DNA of 64,000 nt. Origin: Macrostomum lignano (Eukaryota). The position numbers were made by a program, and so were the translations under genes. The stretch covers positions 620,001 to 684,000 of the forward strand of contig NIVC01000211.1 in the NCBI GenBank assembly GCA_002269645.1. The letters run 5' to 3'. How positions within the stretch are numbered: position 1 is the stretch's first letter; each line of letters starts with the position of its first letter. This document shows positions 3,251-58,233 of this stretch, one piece after another. The notes below the pieces were generated by a model. It was given only the letters and a program-made list of their open reading frames with translations. It searched no databases and had not been told where the DNA came from.

Positions 3251-6200
3251 AATCTCTCATGCCTTCTCTATTGTCACCAATGCAATGACCTGGAATAGTG
3301 GTTTTACTGCTTGGCTTTTGCTAGTGATATGCTCCATTTCCTTTGGAGGACACTCCATTGATGTCAGCAGCATTTTAGATAACCCCTTTAAGCTAGTTAG
3401 GCACTGCTTCCTAAAAGTGTCTAGGTATAATCCACCTCATATATACATACATACAATGATAGCAGGCAATCCCTATTCTTAAAAATATAGAACATGCCTA
3501 GATGCTAATATAAGTTAGCCTGTCCAATATTATTAACAATCTTGAGTCAAGCCTTATGCCTCTACTACTACTACTACCATCACTATGATTCAATCTGCAG
3601 CTATAACTACTAATAGCTGCATTCTACTATTGGCATTCAACTTATTGAACTTTGCATACAGAGGGGCCGTGCCCTCTTGGCATATAGCTTAGCATATAGA
3701 GTTTGCCAAGACAGCAAATGGGACCAAAGTTCTGAGTCCCAATCAATATATATAGTTAATATACATAAAAATGATTAAGTTTAAGTTTGGCATAGTCTGC
3801 ATGTACATAGTTAGATTAGCTAAATTTTAATCAAAATGAGTAGCTCCTTGCCCTTCTAAAAATAAACAAAAAACTAAATAAAAAATGTATTTAACTTTTT
3901 TTAGAAATTAAAAGAGAAACAAAAAAGTTAAATTAAAATAAACTAGTTTTTTATAGTTTATAGTAAATAATATTAACTAGTTTTAACTGATCATTTTTAA
4001 TATTAAATTTGGTGAGCCCTAAATATTGAATTCCTATTTTTAATTTTTGTTTTGGCATATATTTGTATATGATAAAAGTTTATTTATTGGCATACATGGG
4101 TTATACTAAATTCATCAACTAATTTGTCAATGGACCTAAAATTTAAGAAATTGAAGGAAATCAAGTTTGTCAACAATTAAACCAAGATGAGTGAATTTGT
4201 CAACAATAAGACAGATTACTATAAAGTTTATTCCTTAATGCAATAATTGTAAATTTCTATTGTAATTTAGCTGGTTTAAAATCTACAGGTTATAACAGGT
4301 TGTATAAAAATATCAAATAAAAACCATTTGCCTTTGTTATCTTATATGTATCTTCTTAATAGGCTTGTGTTTTTGATTTTCAGTGTGTAATAAATATATA
4401 CTAGCTAGTCAATAGTAATGTTGGGAATGATACTCAAAAAAGTATCAATGAAAACTGATCTTCCAATACCCATTCTGAAAAAAATATTGCCAATAACTGA
4501 AAGTCTGATATCCCAATTTGAGTTTTGTCAATACCCTAATTCCAATACTTTATTCCAATACTAGTTTTTTTTCAAAAAGCAATATCCAACAAGTATAAAT
4601 ATATAATTTAAGCTTATCAGACCTTTTCCTAAATATATAGGAAAAAAAGCAAGCTTAACATTGTTTTAAATGAAGAAACCTTTAGTAAATAAAAAAATAA
4701 ATCAAAAACAATCAGTTGCCACTATAGTCAATCAGATAACTACCTATTAGCCACTGTAGTCAGTCTACTTTATGTCTATTAGTATTATTATTGTTCTAGT
4801 ATAGTATAGTAGCTTTAGGTCTATAATTGCTATACATGCACACTTAATTCCTTAGCCTTTTAGTTGGGTATTAGATGTACTTAGTCAGCCAGCCAGACCA
4901 ACTACTCTAAGCCAAGGTACAGACTTTAAAGCCTTATCTCTGATTTGGCAATACCTTGCCATGCTGCTCTTTATACATACATATAAACCTACATGCAAAT
5001 TGAGTCATTTTCTCTTTCCTTGGCCTATTCAACTTGGCCTCACCCAATATATACGCTTATAATAGTGGATTTATTTATTTGTTGCTGACTAATTATTTAT
5101 ATCATTCACTAACTTGCTGTTTTACTATATCCTATTAGAAAAAATGTTGAAAACCCATGGACGCATACTTTAGAAAAGAGTCAAAATATTTTACTGCACT
5201 TTAAGATTATTATAGGCTTTTCATATTCCCAATTCTGTTTTTAGAACCAGTTTGATACTTTTCATTTTGCTGATTCCATTTTCAGAATTGGTTGCGGAAC
5301 CTTACTCCAGTTCTGGAATTTGGACTGACAAAATTTCTTGATTCGTTTATATATTTCTATGGAAACAATGAAAAATATTTAAAGTCAATTTACCTTGAAA
5401 TATTTTTTGGTAAAATTTTATAAATTTACATTTTACAAATTTGGTTAAGCCAAAGGCAGCAGTTAGTGTTAGTATTTATACAGTTAGTATTATACAGTTA
5501 TTAAAAGGCATAGTAATGGCCAATTCCTTGGCATTTTTGGCAGCAGAATTTTTCTTTAGTGACTCTGACGAATCTGCCAATTTACTAATGACAGAGTATG
5601 ACAATGACACGCGTTCAGAAAGCAATTGCTGCATCTGCTGCTACTCTTGCATTAGACATTAAGGCCATAAAGGGAAAAACAAAGTCAAAGGTGCCAAATT
5701 TTGTCTCTGAAGTTGTGCCACTGTTTAGCATTGATGAATTTTGTCAAAGGTTTAGACTTACCCGTGGCTCTTTTGAATTTTTGCTGCAAGAGCTATATTT
5801 GCATGGCCAGTTTATAGTGCAGGAGCATACCAAAGAAATATCAAGTAGGTCTACTTAATTTTTTCTTACTATCTGTTACTTAAAATTAAATTTTAATATT
5901 TAAAGAAAACATTTATTATAGCAAAAGTATTTAAAGTAATGTTTTTATTTTGCCTTTTGCTTTGCAGATGAGAAGCAGCTACTTGTATACTTGGATTATA
6001 TTGGACACCAAAGCAACCAGTCTGAGTTAGAAGTCCTATATGACATTAGTATTGGAAAAATGAATCAAATTGTGCATACTATATCTCGAAAGATTGTACC
6101 AGCATTATCAAAAAAATTATTAAATGGCCAACATTTTTGGAAGCATCTAATTGTGCCCTAGAACTATTGGAGCAACATGGGTTTCCTGGTGTTATAGGTG

Positions 6201-6550
6201 CAATGGATGGTTGTCACATTGAAATGTCTATTGCATCTACTGACTATACAACTAGGAAGTATCGACAAGCAATCACATTGCAGGCTGTAGCATTGCCCAA
6301 CCTAGTATTTAGTGATGTTTTCATCGGATGTTTTGGACGAATGCAAAATGCTCGTATTTTTCAATACAGTCCTTTATCGAACCAAGTTGTAAGTGGAGAG
6401 CAAATGTATGGATTACATCTACTTGGTGATAGTGCATATCCTCTTCAGAATGGCCTAATGACTCCATTTATTGATAATGGAAACCTAACTAATGTCCAAA
6501 AGTTTTATAATAGACGGTTGGCAGCAGCACATCAAATAGTAGAATGTGCC

Positions 6551-9500
6551 TGTTGGGCCTGGTGCGTGGGGTTAGGGTGCGCTTTTACTCCGTGTATTGT
6601 TTGTGTTCTTAACTCTATGTGTGTACTCATGGTCTGTGGCTCACACTCTTTGCACGTCTCTGCTCTATCGTGATTTTAATGTACATTGTTGGTGTTTTAG
6701 CCCTGGGGTGGGGTTGGCTACTATTGAACCTCGCTTGTAATAAATCGTATCATTGGTTGTCGGTGCACTTGGCACTTTCGTCTTGTCTTGCATACTCTCA
6801 GCTCATGACTTGTTCATTTCAACATTTTGGCGTCGCAAGCAGGATCTACAGATGTCTATAAAGCTACGAGACCCACTGCCTCTAAACAACATTGAAGAGT
6901 TGCAGGCATGGATCGAGGTCTTTGACGCCCAGGCGCGATCAAAAGGAGTGAAGGACACCGATCGCACTGATGACACAGCCGGCAATCTGGCATTGACCAA
7001 TGCCTTCCTTGGCTGCCTTGGCGTGGCACAGCTCATCAAAGTGAAGCAGCTGGTCGCGCCCAAACCGCTCTTGCAGATGAAGTGGGCGGAAATCAAGGAG
7101 TGCCTCGTGAGGTTTCTGGAGCCCAAGAAGAGGCTGCTGATTGCTGAGAGAGTGGCTTTCATGTCCATGCGCCAAGGAGACGCCAAGACGGTTGCCGGCT
7201 TCGCTGCCCGACTTCAAAAGCAGGTGGTGGCATGCGAATTCGAGAAGCTGAAGGGCGAGAATGTTGATCCAGCTGAGCAGCTGATCAAAATGCGCCTCAT
7301 CGCCAGTCTCAGCAACCAGGAGGTCCGGAGCAAGGTTCTCGAGTGCGAAGTATCCGCAGAGCTCTCGGTGAGCCAGATCACCGAGTATGTGCAGCAACTT
7401 CAGATGGTGAGCAAATTTTTGTTCAGGCCCCTGACTGCCTCCGGCCAAGCTGAAGGAGACTCGGCGGTGCATCAGGCATCGCCCGCTAGCCAGGAGGTGC
7501 CAGAAGAGGATTCTGCTGGTGCCAACAGCATCAACGCGGCTGAGATGGTGAGGCCCTGAGCCGGTGGAGGCCAGAGCTGCCAGCGCTGTGGCCAGGCGCA
7601 ACATCGCAGACCGACAGACTGCCGGGCCCTGAAGGTCACCTGTCACAAGTGCGGGAAGACTGGCCACTTTGCGAAGGTCTGCTGGAGTGCCAGGACCCAC
7701 TTTGTCGCACCCAACGAATCCAAGCACTCTGACTCAGCCGTAACCAGAGACGAGCCGGTTTTCTACTGCAGTGCGGGCACCCCTGCTGCATTCTGCGATG
7801 TAAAAATCAACAGAAGGCAGGTCAAAATGGAAAAGGACAGCGGCGCCTCGTGCTCACTAATCTCGAGAAAGATCTGGGAAGAACTCGGCAGGCCACCACT
7901 GAAGTCGCCCAAGTCTCGGATGCTGGCCTACGACGGGCACGTGATGAAGCAGCTCGGCATCCTGGAGTGCCTGGTGGAGACTGGCGGCCCTGATGGCCGC
8001 TTCGCTGCGGCGGAGCTGCCCGTCATCGAATGCGAGCAGAAGTTCGGGTTGCTCGGCCGGGATCTGCTCAGCTCGCTGCCAGCTCACCACTCAGATAAGG
8101 CCAAGCCGCCCAGCAACAACAGGTACGAGAGCTTGTTGGGCATCAAAGGAGCAATTGGTGAGATCCTGTTGAAGGCGGGAGCCAGGCCGATTTTCCAACC
8201 AGCCAGAGAGCTGCCGCTGGCGCTGCGTCCACTGGTGAAGAAGGAGCTGGACCTGATGGAGAAGGCAGGCATAGTTGAGAAGGTGACGTCCTCAGAGTGG
8301 GGCAGCCCCATAGTGGTGACGGTGAAATCTGACAAGATGTCTGTGAGGATCTGCGGAGACTACACCGCTGTCAATCAGTGGGTGCAGGACCAGACGTACT
8401 TGACTCCGTCCATCGAGACAGCCTTCTCAAAGATGGCAAACAAGAAGTTGTTCGGCCGACTGGATTTATCTAACGCTTATTATCAGGTTCCGCTGGAAAA
8501 TGAGTCAAAAGACATCACCACGATCAACACCCCTTTCGGCTGCTACCGCTTTAACAGACTGCCGTACGGCATCAAGGTTTCTCCGTCTGTGTTCCAGCGC
8601 GAGATGGAGAAGCTGCTGGGTGAGCACCCAAGTGTCATCGTGTACCAGGATGATGTGCTCATGGGAGCAGTGTCGAAGGCGGAGCTGCAGAATATCAGAG
8701 AGAAGGTGCTGGACAAGCTGAGGGCGGCTAATGTGAAAATCAACGAAGTGAAGTGCATTTTGGAGGCCAGAAGCCTAAAGTTCCTGGGCCACATCATCGA
8801 TGAAGAGGGGATCAAGCCGGATCCGGGAATGGTGCAGAAGATTCAGGATGTGGAGGCTCCGAAAGGCAAGAAGGATCTCGAGCGGTTTCTGGGCTTGGCG
8901 CAGTTCTATGGTCGGTTGGTTCCCAACTTTGCTGAGAAGTGTCAGCCTCTGCAGGAACTTTGTTGAGCGGACCGTGTGTTTGACTGGAGTGCGGCTGCCG
9001 AGGCAGCGTTCACCAATGTGAAGCAGAGCCTGAGCTCGAATCCGTGTGTGAAACTGTTTGACGTCAACTCGCCGGTGTGTCTGCGGGTGGATGCCAGCGA
9101 GCAGTCTCTGGGCGCTGTGCTGGTGCAGTCAGGGCACCCAGTAATGTACCTCTCTCGGGCGCTGACCAAGTCTGAGGCCAACTACTCCAACATTGAGCAG
9201 GAGGCTCTGGCCATTGTCTGGGCGGTGGAGCGAGCCCGCAAGATGCTCCTGGGGAAGAGGTTCACGCTCCAGACTGACCATGAGCCACTGAAGTACATCT
9301 TCAATCCCAGCAAGAACATTCCTAAAACAGTGTCAGCAAGACTAACTCGCTGGGCCCTGCGACTATCTGCTTTTGACTACGAGGTTGAGTATGTGCCAGG
9401 AAGACTGATGGTGGATGCGGATGCCTTGTCTTGTTTGAGTTTTGCTGCCCAAGACCCTCCAAGTGACGCCATGCACCAGCTGGAGCATGAAGAGGTCGTG

Positions 9501-11063
9501 TCAGAAGGAGCTCTTGTGACTCTGCAGGATCTTCGTGAGGGAACCAGGATGTGCGCGTTGATGAAGCGGCTGCAGCAGAGGATCAGAACAGGCCGGTGGG
9601 GCCAGGTGTCGCAGGTGGAGAGGCCATACAAAGCGTGCCGGGAGGCGCTGTCGGTGGAAGACGGTCTGGTGATCCACAGAACCAGAATTGTGCCCCCACC
9701 TGTTCTCCGCAGGCGCATTCTGGAGGTGGCGCACGACGAGGTGCATCAGAGCGCCGACAACACCAAGGCGCACATCTCCAAGGAGTTCTGGTGGCCGGGT
9801 CTCGATTGCGATGTTCGCAGCTTTGTGGAGCGCTGCCAGCAGTGTTCAGAAACTCGGCCAGTCCTGCAGCAAAGAATCGACACCTGGCCAGCCGAGAGTG
9901 AGCCGTGGTCCCGGGTTCACATGGACCATTGTGAGATTTCTGGTGTCGGCCTGCTACTGCTGCTGTCGGACTCCTACTCCGGGTGGCCTGAGGCGATTCA
10001 GGTGCCAGACCGAACTGCGGACAGTGTCCTGCGAGTTCTGAGAGCGGTATTTGCCAGAAACGGAGTGCCTTGGATGCTGGTGTCGGACAATGCGCCAGAG
10101 TTCAAGTTGGAGAAAGTGTCCCAGTGGCTGCGCAGCATCGGGTGCCAGGAGCTGCACACTCCACCGTACCATCCGGCCTCGAACGGTCAGGCAGAAAGGC
10201 TGGTGAGGATCATCAAGGATGGACTCAAGGTGTGGACGAAGATAGTGCCGTTTGACCACTTCCTGCAGAAACTGCTGCTGACGATCAGGACCAGCCGGCC
10301 CAGTGGAAATCGAGCGGCATCTCTGGACGTTCTGATGTGGGGTCGTCGCCTTCGCCACCCGCTAACCATGACTGAGCAGGTGGGCGATCCAATCTGGCTG
10401 AGGATGCGTCCGGGATTTTCGCCAGTTCCGGGCAAGTTCATGGTGCAGCACGGCCAGAACACGGCGCTGGTAGCCCCTGCGGACCAATCGGACGGCGGCC
10501 TGCAGCTGGCGCACTCGAATCAGTGGACCGGCCGGCCGAGTGCGCCTGGGTCGCCTGAGGGGGCTGAACCTGAGGCGGAGTTGCCGGAGCAGCTTCCTGG
10601 CGCCATGGTTGAGCACCTTCCTGATCTGGAACCAACGGTGGCGCCAATGAACAGTGGCCAGCGAGAGCCGTACGAGCTTCGACCTCGCCAGCCTGTCTGC
10701 TATAAAGTCTAGTGACTCTTTGTGACTGTACTTGACTCTTTGATTTTGTTCTTGTGGTTTCAGTCTTTGTTTGCTTTGGCGGGGGGCAGTGTTGGGCCTG
10801 GTGCATGGGGTTGGGGTGCACTTTTACTCCGTGTATTGTTTGTGTTCTTAACTCTGTGCGTGTATTCATGGTCCGTGGCTCACGCTCTTTGCACGTCTCT
10901 GCTCTATCGTGATTTTAATGTACATTGTTGGTGTTTTAGCCCTGGGGTGGGGTTGGCTACTATTGAACCTCGCTTGTAATAAATCGTATCATTGGTTGTT
11001 GGTGCACTTGGCACTTTCGTCTTGTCTCGCATACTCTCAGCTCATGACATGTTCATTTCAACA
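6551..11063 (+). mobile_element. Full-length Ty3/Gypsy LTR retrotransposon (short LTRs, single gag-pol frame)
   Basis: 274-bp LTRs at 6551-6824 and 10790-11063 (TG...CA, 11 differences). 5-bp TSD GTGCC at 6546-6550 and 11064-11068. PBS TGGCGTCGCAAGCAGGAT from 6828. PPT GGCGGGGGGCAG at 10778-10789. Confidence 0.98.
6852..10712 (+). pseudogene. gag-pol: Gag-Pol polyprotein (CCHC knuckle, aspartic protease, RT, RNase H, integrase) with two in-frame TGA stops
   Basis: One reading frame throughout. Motifs: CHKCGKTGHFAKVC, protease DSGAS, RT YQDD, RNase H VDAS, integrase HDEVH..CQQC, HMDH, SDNAPEF and SNGQAERLV. Stops at 7557-7559 and 8964-8966. Confidence 0.95.
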
Positions 11064-17129: not shown

Positions 17130-17555
17130 GCTGGGCACAGCTGCAGTCACTCACTGCATGGGCACAGCTGCAGTCACACACTGCATGGGCACAGCTGCAG
17201 TCACACACTGCATGGGCACAGCTGCAGTCACGCACTGCATGGGCACAGCTGCAGTCACGCACTGCATAGGCACAGCTGCAGTCACGCACTGCATGGGCAC
17301 AGCTGCAGTCACTCACTGCATGGGCACAGCTGCAGTCACGCACTGCATGGGCACAGCTGCAGTCACACACTGCATGGGCACAGCTGCAGTCACGCACTGC
17401 ATAGGCACAGCTGCAGTCACGCACTGCATGGGCACAGCTGCAGTCGCGCACTGCATAGGCACAGCTGCAGTCACGCACTGCATGGGCACAGCTGCAGTCA
17501 CACACTGCATGGGCACAGCTGCAGTCACACACTGCATGGGCACAGCTGCAATGCA
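17130..17555. repeat. 27-bp minisatellite (GGGCACAGCTGCAGTCACRCACTGCAT)n, about 15 units, intron 1 of copy A
   Basis: Direct periodicity. Same unit as at 35.3 kb and 56.7-57.9 kb. Confidence 0.95.
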
Positions 17556-18059
17556 CACACTCATGCATGCTCAGGCCTGACAGAATGACTTCTCACCCTG
17601 CTGGAACTTTGCCAGCCTCCGCCTGTTCACAAACGAGTCGCACTGCCCTACTCTCCTTGCATGGATAAATCATGGATGAAGCATCCATGATGCCATGTAT
17701 GGATCATACCTGAACATGTATGGAGCCATACCTGATCATACATGGTTCCACGTAAACTTCATCCATGGTTACTTTCCATCCATGTACATTGATGTATGAT
17801 TTTAAATATAATTTTCCTTACTACACTACTGTTAGTAGAACGCAATGTTTGCGTAGGTTCATTTTAAAGCTGAAATTTTCTAAACAAATTCGGCAGCATC
17901 TTTAGTGCTGCTGAGAAATATGTTTCCATTCCCTTATAAATCACTTTCAAAACAAAAAAGTATCAGAACAAATACTTATGCAATTAAATGTAGAAGTAAT
18001 TGAAAACTCGTATGATGACCATTTCGAGACTTATATTATTAATGATAATTAGGCATAAT

Positions 18060-18865: not shown

Positions 18866-21166
18866 TTAATCATGTTCAAACTCTTTGAACAATGGCACAG
18901 CGCAATAACAGTCTTTGCTGAACGATTCTACTGGAACAGCGATGCAGGGTCGATCGACCTCTGAAAAATTAACTATACGTTCGCGTCTGGCCGATCTGGG
19001 CGCATTAGACAGGGATATCAATACAAAATTGAATGTCGAAGACTTTTTGAACATGGATTCCAGCAATGCTTTCCAATTAAGTAAATCGATGGGGAAAGTT
19101 GCTGCTGGTACTCGTAAAACAAAATCAAACAGCGAACCAATGGGATCCAAAATTTGCACTCGAATAGTATTAGGCTCGAGGAACTCTGCAATAGTGCAGA
19201 TTTCGCCGGACTTCAATTGGCAAAGATGGTTAGAATTTTTCGACGCACAAGCTGAGCTTGTCGAGAAAAAATGTCCATTAAAATAAGCAAGTGAGTTTCG
19301 AAGAATACCATGTGGCCTGGATGGCTCTAAAGATATAGAGTTAACTGCATCCACTACAATAGAGTCCTTAACACAAGAAAAGTAGTGATGTAGCAACTTT
19401 TGAAACAAAAACTTGCGAACAAGCTGTGGGCCAAATGACACAGTTCCGCATAAGAACTTTTTGAACATGCCAATGGAGCTCTCAAATGCGAACATAGAAT
19501 AATTAAATACAGGTCCGTACAATTCGTACTGTTCAGCCATATGCAAAAGCAGGTGGAAATTAAGGCGGAGTACTTTCGGTCCGAATATTTGCTGAGCATT
19601 GGAGATAAAAGCTTTGCATAGCTTTTCGATATCAGTCTTATTTGATTGGGGGCTATACAACATGTGATAAATAAGAACTAAATTAGTTAACAGCAGTTTC
19701 AATGGAAAATGCGAAATTCTCTGCAAAAACGTAGGAAGAAGAAAGTATAGCGCAAAGTTTTTAAAATGCTTTGCTTTCCAATCTGAAAAGCCTTTAAAAT
19801 TTGTGTTGATTGTGATGCTAGAAGGAGTTATAGATTGACGAATACAATTAGATATGAAATCCATGCAATTAGCTGAGCAAAAATACAACTCGCGCCTGTT
19901 TGCAGGTAATGACAGCTCTTCTAGTAGATACTTGGTGTGGCCTTCGAAAAAGCAGTGTAAACTGTCAATAGGATTGCAGCTGGGAAACGGAACATAGTCT
20001 AACAAGCAACTGCGCATCTTTACGCCAAAAACAGGCCGATTTCGAATTTGTGCGAGCCGACAGTGTTCAAGATGGGAAGATGGGTTTCTCAAAGGAAACA
20101 AGTAGCCTTCACCATAGCGGAAGATCCAGTTTTTACCTTTCTCGGATACTTTAAAGCTCTCACCTGGGTGCAAGCACCTAGGACAGCTAAACGCACCATT
20201 GTACTGGTGAATGCAGAAGAGCTTAGCAAGAGCGGGCAAGTCACAAACAAAGAGTGTGTAATGGACATGAACGGTGTATTCCGAGAATATAAACTGTTTT
20301 GGCAAATTGTTCATAATTTCAGACAGAAAAGACTGGAAATGCGGGACTGCCTTCGATGAAACAAGAGCAATTAGAATTAAATTTGCAAAGCGTTGACGGA
20401 TGTAAACAGGAAGGTTTAGAAGTTGAGCCTGAAATGGCCAAAAGCTACTCTGAACAGATTCAAAAAAATTGGCGCCATCAGCTGAGATTAGAAGATGCAA
20501 GTGAAGCGACTTGCCAGAAGATAGGCTTAAGCCTTGTTCTTTAACTATTTTGGAATTCAAAACGTCTGTGTTTTTATCCTTTTGCAATTCTTGCTCATAC
20601 TGCAGAATAGTTGAAGTGTGGCTGCTTAAGATAGTCCGCAGCTGTGGAACAATATTGAGCTGTGTCACAGCAACCTTTGACTTTGGGGAATGAACCTGAC
20701 ACTGGCTTTTGCATTCTGGGCAAAAGCCAAATTCAGACACGTCACTATCATCAAGAGGGCAAGTATCTTGAATCAATGATTTGAGCAACTTGACGCTATT
20801 TGGAAGAGCTAGAGAATCTCTACTAAAAATAGAAAGTAGCTTCAGGAGTCTATCAAGAGCAGCCTCTGAAACTCCGGAAGTAATTGCCCACTGAAAAATC
20901 AGAGCCGCCTGCACACTGGGATCTGAGATGGAAGCCAAATTCGCTAAGCTATCTGAACTCTCCTCAAGCACAGGCACAGCATTGTTTTCACCAATAAAAG
21001 TTTCCACAGCGTCAGGACAGCTGTGCGAGTGCGTTACACCGGCTTCGCTTGAAATTGAACTCCTATTACTTGTAGAAAAACTATTTGAGGGAGAAGAAAT
21101 CGCCTGACAAGAGTAGGCTGAGTAATTAGTAGAAAGAGAGTGCTCAGATTCTGATTTACTAGACAT
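18866..21166 (-). CDS. EnSpm/CACTA-family transposase, 766 aa, uninterrupted
   Basis: Motifs ISADGANFFES..SSFWPF...LLNLPVYIR...NLIL, FVCDLPA...YNGAFSCPRC..PG, PIDSLHCFFEGH and W(K)AKHFKNF, characteristic of the CACTA-type transposase family. ATG at 21166, TAA at 18866. Confidence 0.88.
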   Translation of the reverse strand: MSSKSESEHSLSTNYSAYSCQAISSPSNSFSTSNRSSISSEAGVTHSHSCPDAVETFIGENNAVPVLEESSDSLANLASISDPSVQAALIFQWAITSGVSEAALDRLLKLLSIFSRDSLALPNSVKLLKSLIQDTCPLDDSDVSEFGFCPECKSQCQVHSPKSKVAVTQLNIVPQLRTILSSHTSTILQYEQELQKDKNTDVLNSKIVKEQGLSLSSGKSLHLHLLISADGANFFESVQSSFWPFQAQLLNLPVYIRQRFANLILIALVSSKAVPHFQSFLSEIMNNLPKQFIFSEYTVHVHYTLFVCDLPALAKLFCIHQYNGAFSCPRCLHPGESFKVSEKGKNWIFRYGEGYLFPLRNPSSHLEHCRLAQIRNRPVFGVKMRSCLLDYVPFPSCNPIDSLHCFFEGHTKYLLEELSLPANRRELYFCSANCMDFISNCIRQSITPSSITINTNFKGFSDWKAKHFKNFALYFLLPTFLQRISHFPLKLLLTNLVLIYHMLYSPQSNKTDIEKLCKAFISNAQQIFGPKVLRLNFHLLLHMAEQYELYGPVFNYSMFAFESSIGMFKKFLCGTVSFGPQLVRKFLFQKLLHHYFSCVKDSIVVDAVNSISLEPSRPHGILRNSLAYFNGHFFSTSSACASKNSNHLCQLKSGEICTIAEFLEPNTIRVQILDPIGSLFDFVLRVPAATFPIDLLNWKALLESMFKKSSTFNFVLISLSNAPRSARRERIVNFSEVDRPCIAVPVESFSKDCYCAVPLFKEFEHD

Positions 21167-30840: not shown

Positions 30841-34226
<3,386 letters not shown>

Positions 34227-34887: not shown

Positions 34888-36820
34888 CTCTTGCCAGCAT
34901 TCTAGCTTTGTTGAGCACATTTGGGCAATTACTGTGCCTCATTGCCATCGCCTCGGCGTCCATCGTGGGGCTCACCGACTACGACAAACTGGACGCCTGT
35001 CCGTCAGACGACCTACCCGCTGATGGAGTACGGAAGCTGGAGCTTCATCAACTGCCTGAACGTAGCATCGCTGGCTGCGTGCTGAGCTGCCACACGACAG
35101 AGAGCTGTGCAGCTGCCAGCATGGTCGCTGAGCATCGCTGGTGTCTGCTGGCGACTGCCGAGGCCTTCCTCACTGCATGGCTGTACGGACACGGCCAGTG
35201 CGACTCGTTTGTGAACAGGCGGAGGCTGGCAAAGTTCCAGCAGGGTGAGAAGTCATGAGTGACTGCAGCTGTACCCATGCAGTGTGTGACTGCAGCTGTG
35301 CCCATGCAGTGTGTGACTGCAGCTGTGCCCATGCAGTGTGTGACTGCAGCTGTGCCCATGCAGTGTGACTGCAGCTGTGCCCATGCAGTGCGTGACTGCA
35401 GCTGTGCCCATGCAGTGTGACTGCAGCTGTGCCCATGCAGTGTGTGACTGCAGCTGTGCCCATGCAGTGAGTGACTGCAGCTGTGCCCATGCAGTGTGTG
35501 ACTGCAGCTGTGCCCAGTTCACTCACTGGCGAGTCCATGCATGCACCGGTGTGCTGATATCGTTACATCGTTATCGAATTGCAGCTCACACGACCGACCT
35601 GCCCAGCAGCATCGCGGTGAGCTCGCTGCGGATTCTGTACCACTTCCGTGTGGGCTCGTTCAACCTGGCGCCTGTGCACCGGAATCCGCACACTCCGGTG
35701 CTCGTGTCGGCTGTGCTCAACCGGTCTGCGGGCGCGTTCGTGACGGGAGAGTCTGGCTCCTTCATCGATGTGAGCACGGCTGACGGAATCGAGGACCTGT
35801 TTGTGCCCGAGCCCAACGTGACCGTGTTCATGCGAGCTAAGTTCGACTTCAACGGAGAGTGAGTTCCAAGGAAATGCATGTTTGAGTGTCATTCTGAACA
35901 TCCCAATGAAACTGTGTTTTTTACAAAAAATGTGTAGCTGGGTTTTTGGACAAAAAGGATTGAAGTGAATTTTCTTATTTGTGTTTCTCACACTTGTTAT
36001 TGCTATGCAACTGGCTAAGAAACTTGTATATAATTACAGAGAAATTTACAACTACTTCTACTACCTATTCAACTGCGAAGACTACTCATATGGTAATTAC
36101 CTGGCTATGAAAAACGATGAGCGGCTCAAGATGAGCTACCAGCAATGGAATTCGACAGCTTACTGGTACTACGAATATCTAAGCAAACCAAACAGCTTTC
36201 CAACCAGCACCTCGGGCGCCTATCGCGGCTTTGGATTCGTTCTGGATGCAAGCGTCACTGAGGCGAAGTTTTACAACTCCGCTTCTGGTGGAACCTCAAC
36301 CGTGGAAGTCGAGGCTTCCACTTCTGATTCCGGAATCAAAGAGGCCAATTTCAATTGCATGAGGTTCGTCTTTATGCAGCAGTAAATCTTCTATCTGTGT
36401 AGCTAATTGCAAAGACAGAATGAAAAATCACAGGGCAGTCTGCAGTCTTAACCTACACGTATATACATGTATACAATTAACCATCATAGAGTTTAGTGAT
36501 TTTGTATCGTATTAACGACATATCTACGAAGGTATTAGCTCGTAGGTACGGAAAGGCAAACGATCCAACTACAAAATGATCTTGGTTTGTCAAATTTAGA
36601 AGTATTTTTCAAATATTGGATATTACGAGTATTAATACGGCATTATTATAATCGTTGCACTTTCCAAATTCAACATCCCAGAATCGGAGTGTTCGAACCG
36701 GACGCAATCGGGCGCTGCCTTCGAGGCTTCGTCGAGTGCTTCGCCATCTTCAGCGGTCAGCTCAGTGCCGCCCAGTTCCAGCAGCTGAACGCCTGGTGCG
36801 CCAACAAGAATGCGGCTTGA
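34888..36820 (+). CDS. PAN/Apple + LamG/ConA-like secreted protein gene, copy B; exons 34888-35244, 35585-35858, 36040-36363, 36682-36820; start codon not located
   Basis: Hydrophobic leader LLCLIAIASASIVG, PAN Cys pattern, and open frame across GT-AG junctions (phases 1, 2, 2). C-terminal FNCMRIG...LRGFVECFAIFSGQLSAAQFQQL resembles a LamG/pentraxin end. Confidence 0.75.
35260..35515. repeat. 27-bp minisatellite, about 9 units, intron 1 of copy B
   Basis: Same unit as in copies A and C, on the same strand relative to the gene. Confidence 0.95.
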
Positions 36821-37304: not shown

Positions 37305-38525
<1,221 letters not shown>

Positions 38526-39046
38526 AGATAGCGAGAAAGAGCGAGCGAAGCGAGCTCTTTCGAGCTTGCTTGCCGCAGCCAGTCAAGCTGAAAGCACGCA
38601 CACAAGATCACCGGAAACGATTAAGGCAGCTGGAAAGCCAATGGGCGCGGTAAGCGCTTTTATACAGAGGAACTACCTGCTGGAACCAGCCATGCCGAAC
38701 GAAAATCAGACTACTCAAGTAGTGCAAAAGAGTACGTGCAACTACCGAGAAATCTAATTTTCGTAACCGCTCCGGTGCAGGTCCTGGCTATAGATAGAAG
38801 ATAGGTACAGCGTATACATTAGCTGACACGAATTTTTTAATTAACATTTATATTGTTGACAATAGAATATATATTTATGCTGATAATATCCTTTTTTGTC
38901 AGTGTAATATATCGTATAATATAGAAAGTGACAGACATTTGTATCAGAGTAGCTCATATTGTTATTCAATTTCAAGTCAAGCTATAAGCAAGGCTTTTAA
39001 TTTTTTTCGAATTTTATTCTGCTATAACAGTACCTAGAAAGTTCCT

Positions 39047-39355
39047 GAGGTTGTAGCCTAGTGGTCAGAGCGTCGGACTTACAACTTGAAGGTGGGGGTT
39101 CGATTCTTGACTCACTCGAAACAATTAGTGTCCTTGAGCAAGACACTTAACTCTGCATTGCTTCAGTTCACCCAGCTGTAAAATGGGTGCCAGCATTAGC
39201 TGGGGTAATTGAGGCTGTGTGTGGCGACCCCACCCCCCCCCCCAGTCCATGGACTGAACAGCCGAACGCAGCTTTCAGATGCGCCGCGCAATTGCTGCGG
39301 CTGAGCTTTCGGTTGCACATCTGGCCATTAGGGCAGGTGTAATCAGTCGAAGTTT
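39047..39355 (+). mobile_element. tRNA-derived CORE-type SINE, copy 1
   Basis: Box A TAGCCTAGTGG, box B GGTTCGATTCT, then GTGTCCTTGAGCAAGACACTTAACTC..TGCTTCAGTT..CAGCTGTAAAATGGG, resembling the MIR/CORE domain. A second copy lies at 52975. Confidence 0.85.
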
Positions 39356-50900: not shown

Positions 50901-52208
50901 ACGAGGCATTTTAGCTTAATAAAACAGTCATAGTTACTCCTGCCGTTTACCCAAAGTTGCGTTAATTTTGCTTTCGGGTTTTTTTATATGTAAGTCGCAT
51001 TTTTGGCCAAAAACTACGTCGCATTTTTGTTAAAACTAAGTCGCACGGCTGACCGAATTTTGGAGGTTGCACATGTATGGTTTTGCATCATATTATTTGT
51101 AGGTATTAATATTTTCATCATAGTGTTTTTCATAATATTTTAAAAACACTTTTCATACAAAAGCCTTTCTTAGAAAACTCTACTTGTGAAAAACCGTATT
51201 ACCTTTTAGGAATTTTTGGTGTACATTGGTGTACAAAGTCCTTGATGCCCAAATTTGGTCTGGCGTACACGGATACATGATCTGCACACTGGGGCCTATA
51301 GAGAATATTTGCTTCTATAGGCCATAGATAGGAAAATGGCATATATGCTAAAAATTTCTAGGTTAGGCCTTATACTTTAAAAATTGGCATACATATTAGG
51401 GTATAAAACCAAGATGGCCATAGCTGGGATAGGGTTCACAGAAAATGACAACTGGTTTACTATTAGATAGTGAGGTGGGGGTGGAGAAAGAAAAATAAAA
51501 TTTGAAGTTAGGTTTTCTTCAAAACCAGTCAGCGTTGCATTTGCACAAGTAAATCTAGAAAATCATGCAGACAAATCACAATTGATATAGTATACTATAT
51601 CAATCTTCAATAGCCCCTCTGTTAATTTAACAACAGATAGTATAATTCTTTACCTCATATAGCTCTTTATAACCTATAATTTCCTTTTTAAACTAAGACT
51701 AAAACAAGCTTTCCTTGAAGTTTGCTTCTAGAAGACTAAAGACAAAAAATTAATGTATCAAAAGATTGTAAGTATCTACCACTGAATTCATTTTTGAAAA
51801 GATATAACAAATAAAATTAAGTGACAAAAAGAAATAACTAAGAAAAATGATAAGATTGGAATGGAATCATTGTGGAATGGAATAAAAAAGGTATAGATTA
51901 GAGCAAAGTTAAATCTTTGCTCAATAGTCAAACTTTCAAGCCATAGACTCAAGGCAGCAGTTGTCTTGAGTATAGCACTCTGCCACTCTGAATTAACTCA
52001 ATTGCTCATAAACTCAAACTGACTTCATTAAGCTGTGTTATATTATGATTTTTTTGTTGAAATTACTTATTACAAAACAAGTTGAAACCCATTTCACAAT
52101 CAAGTTTTTTTTAAATTCTCAATGTATATTTGTCTGAGATCTTACACTAAGTATGAGTTAGCTTTGATTTATTGGCACTCAATCGATTTATTGCTGCTTG
52201 ATTTCCAG

Positions 52209-54505
52209 CTGGTCCCAGAGAAGCAGCAACGCCAGGCAGTTGCAAGCTTGCTGCACTGGCTGGCCAGCTGCTATCAGCTTGATGAGGCAACTCTGACTGA
52301 AACAGCTGGTCAGCTCTCCAGTCTGTCAGATGGTCAGCTTCGCGACCTGTTGGCTGCAGCGACTGCTGCTAATGAAGTCTGTTTGGACTCTGTGCCACCA
52401 TCCATACCCACCAGTTCATGCTGCATCCCACTGCCTATCAATCTTAAACCGCGACTGCTGGTTTGTCGCCTGCGTAGATGGACAGATTTGGATGACAATT
52501 CAGAGGAACTGTTACGAGTTTGTCGATGCAGTGTAGAAAATGGGAATGCCAATGGTAACTCTTCAAGCGAGCCTGCTACTGATAGTACTAGCGTAGGTGC
52601 TGGATTTGATGTCTTTTGTTGGTAAGTTGAATATCAACTTACCAAGAATATCAAGAATAGCCCATGCCCTTGCTATGTTTTGGCCGTCTCAAAAGTTTAC
52701 TCAAGTAGCCTATTTAGCTTTGTACTAACCGCGGCCATCTCTGCTTAACTTTTGCCCAAATCAGGTTTCATCAGGAAGATTGTAAAGTCTATGAAAGTGC
52801 TGTATATTTGCAAGTTTTTTAGAGCATATCCTAATCATACTACTTTTGTGGCCCATGCAGTCAGTAGTCTGGGTGGTTTCGTTTGAATCATGGTGTCATT
52901 TGGTATCCTAGGCCTAAAACCTCAGTGTTTAAATGAAGTTTGATGGATATCAGTGCCATATTTAGAGCTGAAATGGGGTTGTAGTCTTAGTGGTGAGAGC
53001 GTCGGACTCCCGGCTGAAAGGTCGGGGGTTCGATTCTCGATCCCAGTCCAAACAATTTGTGTCCTTGAGCAAGACACTTAACTCTGCATTGCTTCAGTTC
53101 ACCCAGCTGTAAAATGGGCGCCAGCATTAGCTGGGGTAATTGAGGGTGTGTGGCGACCCAGTCCTTGGACTGAACAGCCGTACGCAACCTTTTCATTTTT
53201 GCTAAGGCATATTGGCAGTAGTATAGTGTGCGTTAAACAGTAGTGAATTTATTTTTTTCCAATCAACTGCACTGCAGCGCCAATCCCATGCACTACACTC
53301 GCCGGGTCTGGTGCACGGCATTCTATTACGAACTGGATAGTCGGGTTGGCGATGCCTTCAAGGCGAACGAGCCCTGCCTGCGCATTGACGGCGGCGGTGG
53401 CGGCAGCTTTGATCGGGTCGGTCGCCGAAGGTTTTGCCTGGCGCCGCTGTGGAATGCCGACAGACCGGCGGCGGCCCATGTGGTGCGCCGGTGCATTGGT
53501 CAGGGCCTGCTGCTTCAGCTGTGCCGCGGTGGCACCGTCTACCTGCAGTGTCGATCGCCAGTGCCCGTGAGCGCCTTTATTGTTAGTTGCTAATGTATTC
53601 GTGTTGCTAAACTTTACGTTTTACGGTTTAAAGGGTTCTAATTTGGGTTTTTACTGAGTTCTAATTGGGGTTTTACTGGATTTTAATTAAGGTTTTACTG
53701 GATTCTAATAGTGGTTTTTCCTGGGTTCTAATTGGGGTTTTGCTGGATTCTAATTGTGGTTTTACTGGGTTCTAATTGGGGCTTAAAGGGTTCTAATTTG
53801 GGTTTTTACTGAGTTCTAATTGGGGTTTTACTGGGTTCTAATTGAAATTTTATTGGGTTTGAATTGGGGTTTAAAGGGTTCTAATTTGGGTTTTTACTGA
53901 ATTCTAATTGGGACTTTAGTGGGTTCTAATTGGGGTTTTTACTGGGTTCTAATTAAGGTTTTACTGGGTTCTAATTGGGGTTTTGCTGGATTCTAATTGT
54001 GATTTTATTGGGTTAAATCTAAACCAAATTTTGGTTTAGATTAGGTTCATGTAGTTAGAATTTACTGGGGATAGACTTAATGATTCCCATTTTTATTGAA
54101 TGGCTTCTAAATTCTATGAATCCATGATCTATATGGGCTGATTCACTAACAGTGCATCAATCAAGCCACTCCGTCCACTCCAACCCTCAGGTCTTTGTCC
54201 AGTCGCCCAACGCTAGTCTGCAGCGCGGCTGGCACCCCGCCACGGTTTGCCGGGTGCCCCCTGGCGGCAGCCTGTGCGTGTTCTCCGACCAGCTCTTCCT
54301 CCAGCACCTGTCCGACTGTAGGCGCTTTGAAGATGCCTACAGCTTGATCAGAATGTGCTCGATTCGGATTTCATTTGCCAAAGGTTGGGGCAGCGACTAT
54401 CGTAGGCAGAGGATCACTGCCACGCCTTGTTGGCTGGAGATTGTGCTGGCTAAGCCGCTTGTTTGGCTTGACCGAGTTTTAGTTGCTATGGGCGGGCCCA
54501 GCTGA
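52209..54505 (+). CDS. smad: Atypical Smad (degenerate MH1 directly fused to an R-Smad-like MH2); exons 52209-52621, 53278-53566, 54191-54505; 5' exon(s) not located
   Basis: MH1-like CCIPLP..KPRLLVCRLRRWTDL..EL..VCRC...CCANPMHY. MH2 WCTAFYYELDSRVG, RFCL, IGQG, VFVQSPN..GWHPATVCRVPPG, RMCSIRISFAKGWG.DYRRQ.ITATPCWLE, PLVWLDRVL..MG.P. Junction phases are consistent. Confidence 0.92.
52975..53187 (+). mobile_element. tRNA-derived CORE-type SINE, copy 2 (3'-truncated), in a Smad intron
   Basis: Closely similar to 39047-39270, with box A/B and the CORE-like segment. Confidence 0.85.
53630..54015. repeat. Degenerate about 21-bp repeat (GGGTTCTAATTGGGGTTTTACT)n in the last Smad intron
   Basis: Direct. 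Confidence 0.9.
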
Positions 54506-55817: not shown

Positions 55818-58233
55818 CTATATAGTTACGAGCGTATCCTTAGAATTGTCGAAATCATTCAGCTGTTTCTTGCTCCATTGACCCTGAACAATGCCAAAGC
55901 ATCCGATCCATCCTTTCAAGCAGTTTTCTTTCGTCGATCCGCAGTCTCCAACAATGAGGCATTGGAAAGATTGGCTGCTGCTGCTGCTTTGATGTCGGCT
56001 TTGATTTTTTAGCGGCGCCAAACTTAGTGTTCCATTTGCGTAAAACAACACCTGTGAGCCTTGTTGGGTAAATCCGTATCCCATATCTGACGGAAGTGAA
56101 CCAACAGGAAAACTGCCCTTGGTTCCGAAGTAATTGTACCTTTGCGGAGCAGCTGCCGGCATGTAACGGTACCACAGTTTTCGGTTGCGCGGTCTGGCAA
56201 CCAACCTGCATCCCAATTGTCCACTTTCACCACAGTCTCTGATGCAAAAAAATGGCGTTGCTGGTGTCACTAAAATTTTACGTTGAAATTTGCAGTTAAG
56301 TTAGACTTTCTACAGCTGCATACGGATTAATCTAGAATCTTTATTCTCTTTTACAATCACTTACTTCTCGTGCAAAAATAGTCTGGCTCGCATGAACACG
56401 GTCACATTTGGCTCGGGCACAAACAGAACCTCGATTCCGTCAGCCGTGCTCACACCGATGAAGGAGCCAGACTCTCCCGTCACGAACGCGACCACAGACC
56501 GGTTGAGCACAGCCGACACGAGCACCGGAGTGTGCGGATTCCGGTGCACAGACGCCAGGTTGAACGAGCCCACACGGAAGTGGTACAGAATCCGCAGCGA
56601 GCTCACCGCGATGCTGCTGGGCAGGTCGGTCGTGTGAGCTGCAATTCGATAACGATGTAACGATATGAGCACAGCTGCAGTCACACACTGCATGGGCACA
56701 GCTGCAGTCACACACTGCATGGGCACAGCTGCAGTCACACACTGCATGGGCACAGCTGCAGTCACGCACTGCATGGGCACAGCTGCAGTCACACACTGCA
56801 TGGACACAGCTGCAGTCACGCACTGCATAGGCACAGCTGCAGTCACGCACTGCATGGGCACAGCTGCAGTCACACACTGCATGGGCACAGCTGCAGTCAC
56901 GCACTGCATGGGCACAGCTGCAGTCACACACTGCATGGGCACAGCTACAGTCACTCACTGCATGGGCACAGCTGCAGTCACGCACTGCATGGGCACAGCT
57001 GCAGTCACGCACTGCATGGGCACAGCTGCAGTCACGCACTGCATGGGCACAGCTGCAGTCACGCACTGCATGGGCACAGCTGCAGTCACACACTGCATGG
57101 GCACAGCTGCAGTCACACACTGCATGGGCACAGCTGCAGTCACACACTGCATGGGCACAGCTGCAGTCACGCACTGCATGGGCACAGCTGCAGTCACACA
57201 CTGCATGGACACAGCTGCAGTCACGCACTGCATGGGCACAGCTGCAGTCACGCACTGCATGGGCACAGCTGCAGTCACACACTGCATGGGCACAGCTGCA
57301 GTCACGCACTGCATGGGCACAGCTACAGTCACGCACTGCATGGGCACAGCTGCAGTCACGCACTGCATGGGCACAGCTGCAGTCACGCACTGCATGGGCA
57401 CAGCTGCAGTCACGCACTGCATGGGCACAGCTGCAGTCACACACTGCATGGGCACAGCTGCAGTCACGCACTGCATGGGCACAGCTGCAGTCACGCACTG
57501 CATGGGCACAGCTGCAGTCACTCACTGCATGGGCACAGCTGCAGTCACGCACTGCATGGGCACAGCTGCAGTCACGCACTGCATGGGCACAGCTGCAGTC
57601 ACGCACTGCATGGGCACAGCTGCAGTCACGCACTGCATGGGCACAGCTGCAGTCACGCACTGCATGGGCACAGCTGCAGTCACGCACTGCATGGGCAAAG
57701 CTGCAGTCACGCACTGCATGGGCACAGCTGCAGTCACGCACTTCATGGGCACAGCTGCAGTCACGCACTGCATGGGCACAGCTGCAGTCACGCACTTCAT
57801 GGGCACAGCTGCAGTCACGCACTGCATGGGCACAGCTGCAGTCACGCACTGCATGGGCACAGCTGCATTCACTCGTGACTTCTCACCCTGCTGGAACTTT
57901 GCCAGCCTCCGCCTGTTCACAAACGAGTCGCATTGGCCGTGTCCGTACAGCCATGCAGTGAGGAAGGCCTCGGCAGTCGCCAGCAGACACCAGCGATGCT
58001 CACCGACCATGCTGGCAGCTGCACAGCTCTCTGTTGTGTGACAGCTCAGCACGCAGCCAGCGATGCTACTGTCAAGCAGTTGATGAAGCGCCAGCCTCCT
58101 TACTCCTCCAGTAATAGAGAGCAAGAGACGGACAGGCGCGCAGTCTTTCGTAGTCAGTTATGCCTATGGTATCCGCCGAAGAGCCAGAGAGGTAGCAGCA
58201 GCAAAGGGCGAAGTATGCAATGAGATTTTTCAT
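55818..58233 (-). pseudogene. PAN/Apple + LamG/ConA-like gene, copy C; exons 58233-57887, 56638-56365, 56269-55818; two apparent +1 frameshifts (near 58125, and in a T7 run near 56250)
   Basis: ATG at 58233 gives signal peptide MKNLIAYFALCCCYLSGSSA. PAN exon and exon 2 are nearly identical to copies A/B. C-terminal FQCLIVG...LKGWIGCFGIVQGQW. The frameshifts could be real or sequencing errors. Confidence 0.78.
56667..57870. repeat. 27-bp minisatellite, about 44 units, intron 1 of copy C
   Basis: Same unit as in copies A and B. Confidence 0.97.

Follow-up and report, generated by a model that had tools for sequence, protein, structure and literature searches.

Our analysis of a 64,000-nucleotide stretch of the genome of the flatworm Macrostomum lignano (assembly GCA_002269645.1, contig NIVC01000211.1, positions 620,001 to 684,000 of the forward strand; hereafter the window) concerns an unusual Smad gene at 52209-54505 on the plus strand, the copy annotated as Mlig013894.g1. 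Smads usually consist of an MH1 domain, a linker and an MH2 domain; MAPK, CDK, GSK3 and ubiquitin ligases act on the linker, and receptors act on the C-terminal SSXS motif. We propose, with moderate confidence, that the gene is a functional, transcribed Smad2/3 paralogue present in three copies, which receptors could not activate, which is without the canonical DNA-binding hairpin, and whose MH2 domain would make it a decoy or inhibitor.

The three exons (52209-52621, 53278-53566 and 54191-54505) splice into a single open frame of 338 codons, and the encoded protein is identical to GenBank PAA87946.1, a Macrostomum lignano 'hypothetical protein, partial'. The features of the gene are as follows:

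52203 to 52208, plus strand: TTCCAG, candidate spliced-leader trans-splice acceptor with a pyrimidine-rich tract just 5'; it fits the motif [T/C]TNCAG, and the GenBank models begin at the next base.
52209 to 52621, plus strand: exon A, residues 1-137 and two bases of Cys138, encoding a degenerate MH1-like N-domain with three N-terminal helices, a shortened hairpin region at residues 72-86 (52422-52466), the zinc-ligand residues Cys72 and Cys107, and an Asn/Ser-rich insert of 17 residues (basis: partial Pfam MH1 match, alignment and AlphaFold model).
52622 to 53277, plus strand: intron 1 (gtaagt...ctgcag), with identical splice sites in all three copies.
53278 to 53566, plus strand: exon B, in which the MH1 end ANPMHYTRR is joined straight to the MH2 start VWCTAFYYE and the frame runs on to ...CRSPVP.
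53567 to 54190, plus strand: intron 2 (gtgagc...cctcag).
54191 to 54505, plus strand: exon C, which completes MH2 and holds both the L3 loop (GWGSDYRRQRITATPCW) and helix H5 (KPLVWLDRVLVAMGGPS); the stop codon TGA is at 54503-54505.

The boundaries are canonical throughout (ttccag/CTG, TTG/gtaagt, ctgcag/C, CCC/gtgagc and cctcag/GTC), and intron 1 divides the codon of Cys138 (TG/C). The first-pass annotation of this DNA had given the range 52209-53400, which ends inside exon B; the gene extends to 54505. Both introns carry repeats. Intron 1 holds a dispersed repeat of about 220 bp (about 52975-53195) with a tRNA-like beginning, possibly a short interspersed nuclear element, whose second copy lies at 39049-39275; it matched neither a tRNA in ARAGORN nor an Rfam family. 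Intron 2, which measures 624 bp in the window copy versus 688 bp in the other two, holds, at 53633-54014, about 17 tandem copies of a 22-bp repeat (GGGTTCTAATTGGGGTTTTACT).

The end of MH1 runs directly into the start of MH2 within a single exon, exactly as had been described (...FDVFC-C-ANPMHYTRR-VWCTAFYYELD...). Ala139 (53279), His143 (53291-53293) and Trp149-Cys150 (53309-53314) are all contiguous in exon B, so that no isoform keeping both ends could gain a linker by splicing. In an alignment with eight other Smads, including the canonical Smad2/3 and one Smad6, no linker column is occupied by this protein. We also compared the spacing between the NPxH and WC motifs in 151 collected Smads with both flanking motifs: it is 4 residues here (NPMHY to WC), whereas the 146 Smads outside this gene family have at least 39 (median 64). 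No PPxY or PY motif occurs anywhere in the protein and there are no linker SP/TP sites, Ser/Thr-Pro sites being found only within MH2. The short spacing and the empty columns bear out the claim that the linker is absent. An assembly deletion had been considered as an explanation; the junction and the tail-less end are the same in three genomic copies on separate contigs and in UniRef models, which we take to be derived from an older M. lignano assembly. The linker loss is therefore not an assembly error.

By its sequence, the MH2 domain is clearly of the Activin/TGF-beta receptor-activated Smad (R-Smad) type, that is, Smad2/3. Pfam MH2 (PF03166) matched residues 148-320 with 162.2 bits versus a cut-off of 25 (E=1.9e-47). 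Among PDB matches, human Smad2/3 reached 201 bits, Smad1 182, Smad4 100 and Smad7, the weakest Smad, 61; the Smad4 chains match in two separate stretches at about 100 bits. Custom profiles gave 212.5 bits for Smad2/3-type MH2 versus 98.9 bits for Smad6 MH2, the latter not above what bona fide R-Smads reach. The AlphaFold confidence (predicted local distance difference test, pLDDT) exceeds 90 over most of residues 148-338, and Foldseek aligned the predicted domain to Smad2/3 MH2 with a template modelling (TM) score of about 0.9. Of the 46 MH2 positions showing 85% conservation or more among 44 other Smads, this protein retains 41, even though its MH2 is no more than about 53% identical to that of any other Smad.

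K298, Y304 and R306, presumably residues of the phosphoserine-binding pocket and the L3 scaffold, are invariant in the alignment, and the RVG loop-helix motif and helix H5 are also kept. These are the surfaces by which the MH2 domains of R-Smads and Smad4 accept the phosphoserine tail of a neighbour and trimerise, and with them retained, docking would still be possible. The C-terminus, in turn, reads ...VLVAMGGPS (MGGPN in copy g2) and stops seven residues short of the Smad2 end, ...CSSMS. The SSXS receptor-phosphorylation motif, whose absence the earlier annotation had overlooked, is not found in the protein, nor in the in-frame sequence 3' of the stop codon. Since this tail is missing, the protein cannot be a receptor-activated Smad, and the missing SSXS shifts the interpretation more than the missing linker.

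The N-domain is much more degenerate. Pfam MH1 (PF03165) gave 24.5 bits versus a cut-off of 25 and covered only profile positions 54-101, and no MH1 structure was matched by Foldseek with the N-domain. The first 58 residues are modelled by AlphaFold as three helices (pLDDT 81-89). The zinc ligands were correctly reported as kept, all four columns (C72, C107, C138 and H143) being invariant in the alignment. The basic helix is likewise absent as claimed: AVASLLHWLAS stands where AVKSLVKKLKK would be, with LLHWLAS replacing the basic KKLKK stretch. The DNA-contacting beta-hairpin, a RSLDGRLQVSHRKGLP-type segment in R-Smads and Smad4, is absent as well, the segment between the flanking cysteines being 13 residues long (IPLPINLKPRLLV) versus 24 in canonical Smad2/3. 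The loss of the hairpin is thus true of the gene but not peculiar to it, since the canonical Smad2/3 of M. lignano (PAA46017.1), in which the linker and the SSMS tail are present, is also without the canonical hairpin (CVTAAVAQGDPEPGHVTAC). Judging from these sequences, the Activin-type Smads of M. lignano may in general be without hairpin-based DNA binding.

Judged by profile log-odds and shared derived residues, the favoured origin of the gene is a Macrostomum-lineage Smad2/3 paralogue, with a chimera and a true inhibitory Smad (I-Smad) orthologue as minority alternatives. Seven derived MH2 states are common to the window gene and M. lignano Smad2/3, among which F177G and K263C are rare changes at sites that Smad2/3 and Smad6 otherwise both conserve; the motifs HYTR and NPMHY at the MH1 end are also common to the window gene and the M. 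lignano Smad2/3 paralogues. At the M. lignano Smad2/3 locus (NIVC01005114.1), a single exon contains the MH1 end, the whole linker and the MH2 start, and one in-frame deletion in a Smad2/3-like exon of this kind would yield the present exon B. Neither intron has a counterpart at the same position in the Smad2/3 of M. lignano or oyster or in fish Smad6; intron 1 lies in phase 2 within the zinc-ligand Cys codon here versus phase 0, three codons upstream, in M. lignano Smad2/3. Among environmental sequences, P0050 is a 375-amino-acid Smad2/3-like protein without MH1 and without SSXS.

Three near-identical genomic copies, Mlig013894.g1, g2 and g3, lie on the separate contigs mentioned above; the other two are 98% identical to the window protein, and the loci are collinear. 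For g2, collinearity with the window extends over about 19 kb, at a nucleotide identity of 95-99%, in keeping with the recent genome duplication known for M. lignano. For the Mlig_3_7 annotation, assembled RNA-seq transcripts were split at experimentally mapped spliced-leader sites and freed of the leader before open reading frames were called (PMC5730564). As the public gene models come from this transcript-based annotation, they are indirect evidence of transcription and weaken the earlier suggestion that the locus might be untranscribed.

The copies are very young, with intron divergence of 0.1-2.7%. No indel was found over 1017 nt of coding sequence in any of the three, versus six indel blocks in the two introns (Fisher p=0.03), and the ratio of non-synonymous to synonymous substitution rates (dN/dS) was 0.39-0.46 for g1 against the other two copies and 0.82 for g2 against g3. 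The possibility of neutral drift raised in the first-pass annotation is weakened by the intact, indel-free frames and by the ratios obtained with g1, a comparison of low statistical power. The long-term retention of residues is better evidence of selection than the copy comparison: 41 of 46 conserved MH2 positions and four zinc ligands kept despite about 53% identity indicate long selective maintenance after divergence.

Concerning the start of translation, all three GenBank models are flagged partial and begin at the first base 3' of the acceptor TTCCAG. The published M. lignano trans-acceptor motif is [T/C]TNCAG, and the spliced leader is 35 nt long and ends in ATG (PMC8629364). In flatworms, initiation at the leader AUG is documented (Cheng et al. 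2006, cited in PMC9851317). Because exon A starts in phase 0, a leader ATG would be in frame; there is no internal in-frame ATG in exon A, and tblastn with the N-termini of ten Smads found no convincing Smad-like exon in the 14 kb upstream. The start codon is, from these sequence features, probably the ATG of the trans-spliced leader, giving M+LVPEKQQ... and a protein of 339 amino acids, and a leader-supplied AUG would explain the 'partial' flag on the public models. Alternatively, translation may begin at an in-frame ATG at 52122 within an unspliced leader; the stretch around this ATG is nearly identical in all copies and hence uninformative against a start there. M. lignano Smad2/3 was considered as a control for the spliced-leader ATG and dropped, as its copies start at different residues and the acceptor is ambiguous.

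A reading in which exon A belongs to the 5' untranslated region, with translation from Met142, the first in-frame ATG within the annotated exons, giving an MH2-only protein, is very improbable. Exon A has 137 open codons, for which the chance is about 0.001 in random sequence, and its other two frames are closed; in addition, residues of the MH1 core, zinc ligands included, can be aligned, and a spliced-leader ATG would be in frame.

Based on this evidence, the following mechanism can be proposed. Without SSXS, type I receptors would not activate the protein. With the MH2 pocket, the L3 scaffold, the RVG motif and H5 kept, it would still dock phosphorylated Smads, Smad4 or the receptor. Canonical binding to Smad-binding DNA elements would not be expected in a protein with neither the canonical hairpin nor the basic helix, and complexes would gain no canonical hairpin contact with DNA from such a decoy subunit. 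With no linker and no PY motif, the protein would also stand outside linker phosphorylation and control by WW-domain ligases; escape from linker-based control is plausible on these grounds. The decoy may enter phospho-Smad2/3 complexes, occupy receptors or act as a competitor of Smad4. Overall, Activin/TGF-beta signalling would be damped constitutively, and the protein would be a functional counterpart of inhibitory Smads or of tail-less R-Smads with dominant-negative action. A constitutive decoy would be the most economical model of the features read from the sequence.

Several observations weigh against the favoured reading as a whole. For the presumed zinc-binding core, residues 57-145, the AlphaFold pLDDT does not reach 50, and a folded MH1 remnant is thus putative. 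The L3 position equivalent to Smad2 Thr430 (numbering from the alignment) is Arg, which may alter receptor docking. The dN/dS test among the copies had only 15 variable codons (6 synonymous and 9 non-synonymous; p=0.14) and low power. No orthologue outside M. lignano was found by a whole-protein word search of 5.8 billion proteins, in which the N-domain was covered by M. lignano copies only, or by the N-domain search described below, so that long-term constraint on the whole architecture cannot be measured, and no mention of Mlig013894 was found in Macrostomum paper texts or supplements. The N-domain scored 27.6 bits on a Smad6 N-domain profile (vertebrate-only) versus 12.9 bits on an R-Smad MH1 profile; this better score on an inhibitory-Smad profile fits poorly with a simple Smad2/3 duplication. 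Lastly, sequence alone does not separate an inhibitory role from that of a positive adaptor.

The last two points lead to the rival explanations. The profile difference, together with an unbroken I-Smad alignment from residue 38 to residue 146 in which the motifs LLxC, CxC and CC-NP-H are included, would be expected if the gene were a Macrostomum orthologue of the inhibitory Smads (Smad6/7/Dad) that kept an R-Smad-like MH2 and lost the PY-bearing linker. The absence of SSXS fits this as well, and six MH2 positions agree with the Smad6 rather than the Smad2/3 consensus. An exhaustive phmmer search with the N-domain among 1.8 billion representatives returned only its own cluster, one spurious match and, as the best non-self match, an environmental I-Smad-like fragment with a Ser-rich insert in the same place. 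However, most of the changes at the six Smad6-like positions are conservative, the Smad6 MH2 score is no higher than the R-Smad level and less than half that of the Smad2/3-type profile, Smad7 is the weakest Smad among the PDB matches, helix H5 (PLVWLDRVL...) is kept here and absent from the aligned Smad6, and rare derived residues are shared with M. lignano Smad2/3; we regard I-Smad orthology as distinctly unlikely. The likeness could also be confined to exon A, in a chimera of an I-Smad-type exon A and the MH2 exons of a linker-deleted Macrostomum Smad2/3 paralogue. Exons B and C are indeed Smad2/3-like, with the M. lignano-specific HYTR, NPMHY, G177 and C263, and the single MH1-end/linker/MH2-start exon of M. 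lignano Smad2/3 needs one in-frame deletion to give exon B. Yet the intron-1 positions are near but unequal, as described above, the I-Smad likeness amounts to a few residues and hairpin loss, and it may be convergent, since M. lignano Smad2/3 is also without the hairpin. A donor I-Smad gene of M. lignano was not retrieved for comparison: for invertebrate or flatworm I-Smads, a Smad6 query listed only vertebrates and a query with the environmental fragment gave nothing new. A chimera is therefore held to be unlikely. The environmental sequences P0067, P0069 and P0070 have an I-Smad-like N-domain with a Ser-rich insert at the position of the insert in the window gene; the exon or contig of the I-Smad-like fragment ends at the conserved intron after NPFHWSTTIP, and the sequence beyond, including any linker, is not covered.

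The remaining alternatives concern function rather than descent. If the protein were a positive partner resembling Smad4, it would occupy a slot in phospho-R-Smad trimers and recruit co-factors through its N-domain; like Smad4, it is without SSXS yet keeps the pocket and the trimer-interface residues, and its three-helix N-terminus could serve as an interaction module. Against this, the activation-domain insert of Smad4 is absent, the MH2 match to Smad4 is far weaker than that to Smad2/3, the canonical DNA-binding hairpin is missing, and tail-less R-Smads, engineered or spliced, behave as dominant negatives. There is accordingly little chance of a positive partner, and we rate it no higher than I-Smad orthology. 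The locus could instead be a functionless transcribed relic, a Smad2/3 duplicate that has been decaying by neutral drift since the loss of the linker and tail. The dN/dS among copies is not significantly below 1 and is highest between g2 and g3, the N-domain is very divergent with a low-confidence model, and the searches found no orthologues. A relic is nevertheless improbable, given the complete 338-codon frame, identical splice sites and indel-free coding sequence in all three copies, compared with the indels of the introns, and given that the family-conserved MH2 positions and the four zinc ligands survive at such low identity.

Compared with known systems, the proposed decoy shares with Smad2/3, including PAA46017.1, the sequence and predicted fold of MH2, the L3-loop scaffold, helix H5 and the MH1 zinc ligands, and with M. 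lignano Smad2/3 in particular the derived residues and the hairpin loss. Unlike Smad2/3, it has no linker, SSXS, basic helix-2 motif or N-terminal helix 1, and it has extra N-domain inserts and different intron positions. With the inhibitory Smads (Smad6, Smad7 and Drosophila Dad) it has in common the absence of SSXS, a hairpin-less N-domain (as M. lignano Smad2/3 also has), apparently the CxC and CC-NP-H motifs and, as the sequence suggests, a likely pathway-damping role. In contrast, the inhibitory Smads have a linker (the PPPPY motif of fish Smad6 sits in its own short exon) and a strongly diverged MH2 that ends just after CWLEI..., whereas in the window protein the MH2 is of the Smad2/3 type and includes H5, and a PY motif is absent. 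The Smad4-type MH2, activation-domain insert and DNA-binding MH1 of the common-partner Smad (Co-Smad), Smad4, are not present in the window protein.

The architecture of flatworm Smads is already known to be plastic. Echinococcus Smads (EmSmadA and EmSmadB), described by Zavala-Gongora et al. in 2008, are reportedly without an MH1 domain, and DAF-14 of C. elegans is an unusual nematode Smad without MH1. These are also lineage-specific Smad2/3-type Smads with lost DNA-binding capacity; unlike the window protein, they have lost the whole MH1 and reportedly kept a linker-like region and the receptor-phosphorylated tail, whereas here an MH1 remnant is kept and the linker and tail are lost. The predicted decoy behaviour has its basis in tail-less R-Smad dominant negatives, such as the splice form Smad8B and engineered Smad2/3 lacking SSXS or mutated in it, which also have an intact R-Smad MH2 and no phosphorylatable tail. 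Those are splice forms or constructs with hairpin and linker; the gene in the window is a dedicated germline gene in three copies. Within the same phylum, planarian beta-catenin4, a paralogue reportedly truncated at its C-terminus and inhibitory to Wnt signalling (PMC5643146), may be comparable as a duplicated transducer that acts as a competitor without its activating part, although the pathway and the protein family are different and this is an analogy only. Hairpin and tail are already missing from the inhibitory Smads; what appears to be new is the combination in which an MH1 remnant sits directly on a Smad2/3 MH2 that is well conserved, linker and tail both being absent. A literature search on linkerless Smads gave nothing relevant; the sequence itself is public but unnamed, and literature on it was not found.

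The rest of the window contains mainly repeats and mobile elements. The interior of a Ty3/gypsy-type long terminal repeat retrotransposon, with frames that are apparently mostly intact, lies at 6753-10712 on the plus strand and comprises three open reading frames:

6753 to 7559, plus strand: gag-like open reading frame, no Pfam match.
7827 to 8966, plus strand: open reading frame for aspartyl protease and reverse transcriptase.
8976 to 10712, plus strand: open reading frame for RNase H and integrase.

DNA-transposon remnants are found at 6137-6673 on the plus strand (a Harbinger/PIF-like DDE_Tnp_4 fragment) and at 18866-21166 on the minus strand (an open reading frame of 766 amino acids with DUF1258, Transposase_21 and DUF4218 matches). 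One 27-bp minisatellite occurs at three sites, 17132-17565, 35259-35516 (inverted) and 56665-57872, each array adjoining a similar open reading frame fragment (...VTGESGSFIGVSTADGIE...FVPEPNVTVF...) with no Pfam match, and the whole resembles a dispersed repeat unit. At 33446-34042, a degenerate tandem array of 12-bp units (AAACCCTAGCAT / AAACCCTAACAT) with the telomere-type hexamer CCCTAA may be an interstitial telomere-like repeat. Close together are a 1.2-kb (ATAG)n microsatellite (37305-38531), a 15-bp repeat of about 29.5 copies (31044-31486) and a (TAG)96 array (31991-32278).

As for its significance, the gene is a clear candidate for a flatworm open reading frame that is completed only by the AUG of the spliced leader. 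A wider and so far doubtful idea is that it represents a new class of pathway brake, with an I-Smad-type N-domain, no linker, a tail-less trimerising Smad2/3 MH2 and a leader-derived start, which would be a decoy free of receptor and linker control and would perhaps replace or supplement Smad6/7. As a natural minimal MH2 module, present in three copies in a flatworm ready for transgenesis, the gene offers a way to ask what MH2 does on its own in vivo. The finding bears on the way in which inhibitory Smads can evolve from signal transducers, and on the tuning of Activin/TGF-beta signalling in a species that serves for studies of stem cells, regeneration and reproduction.

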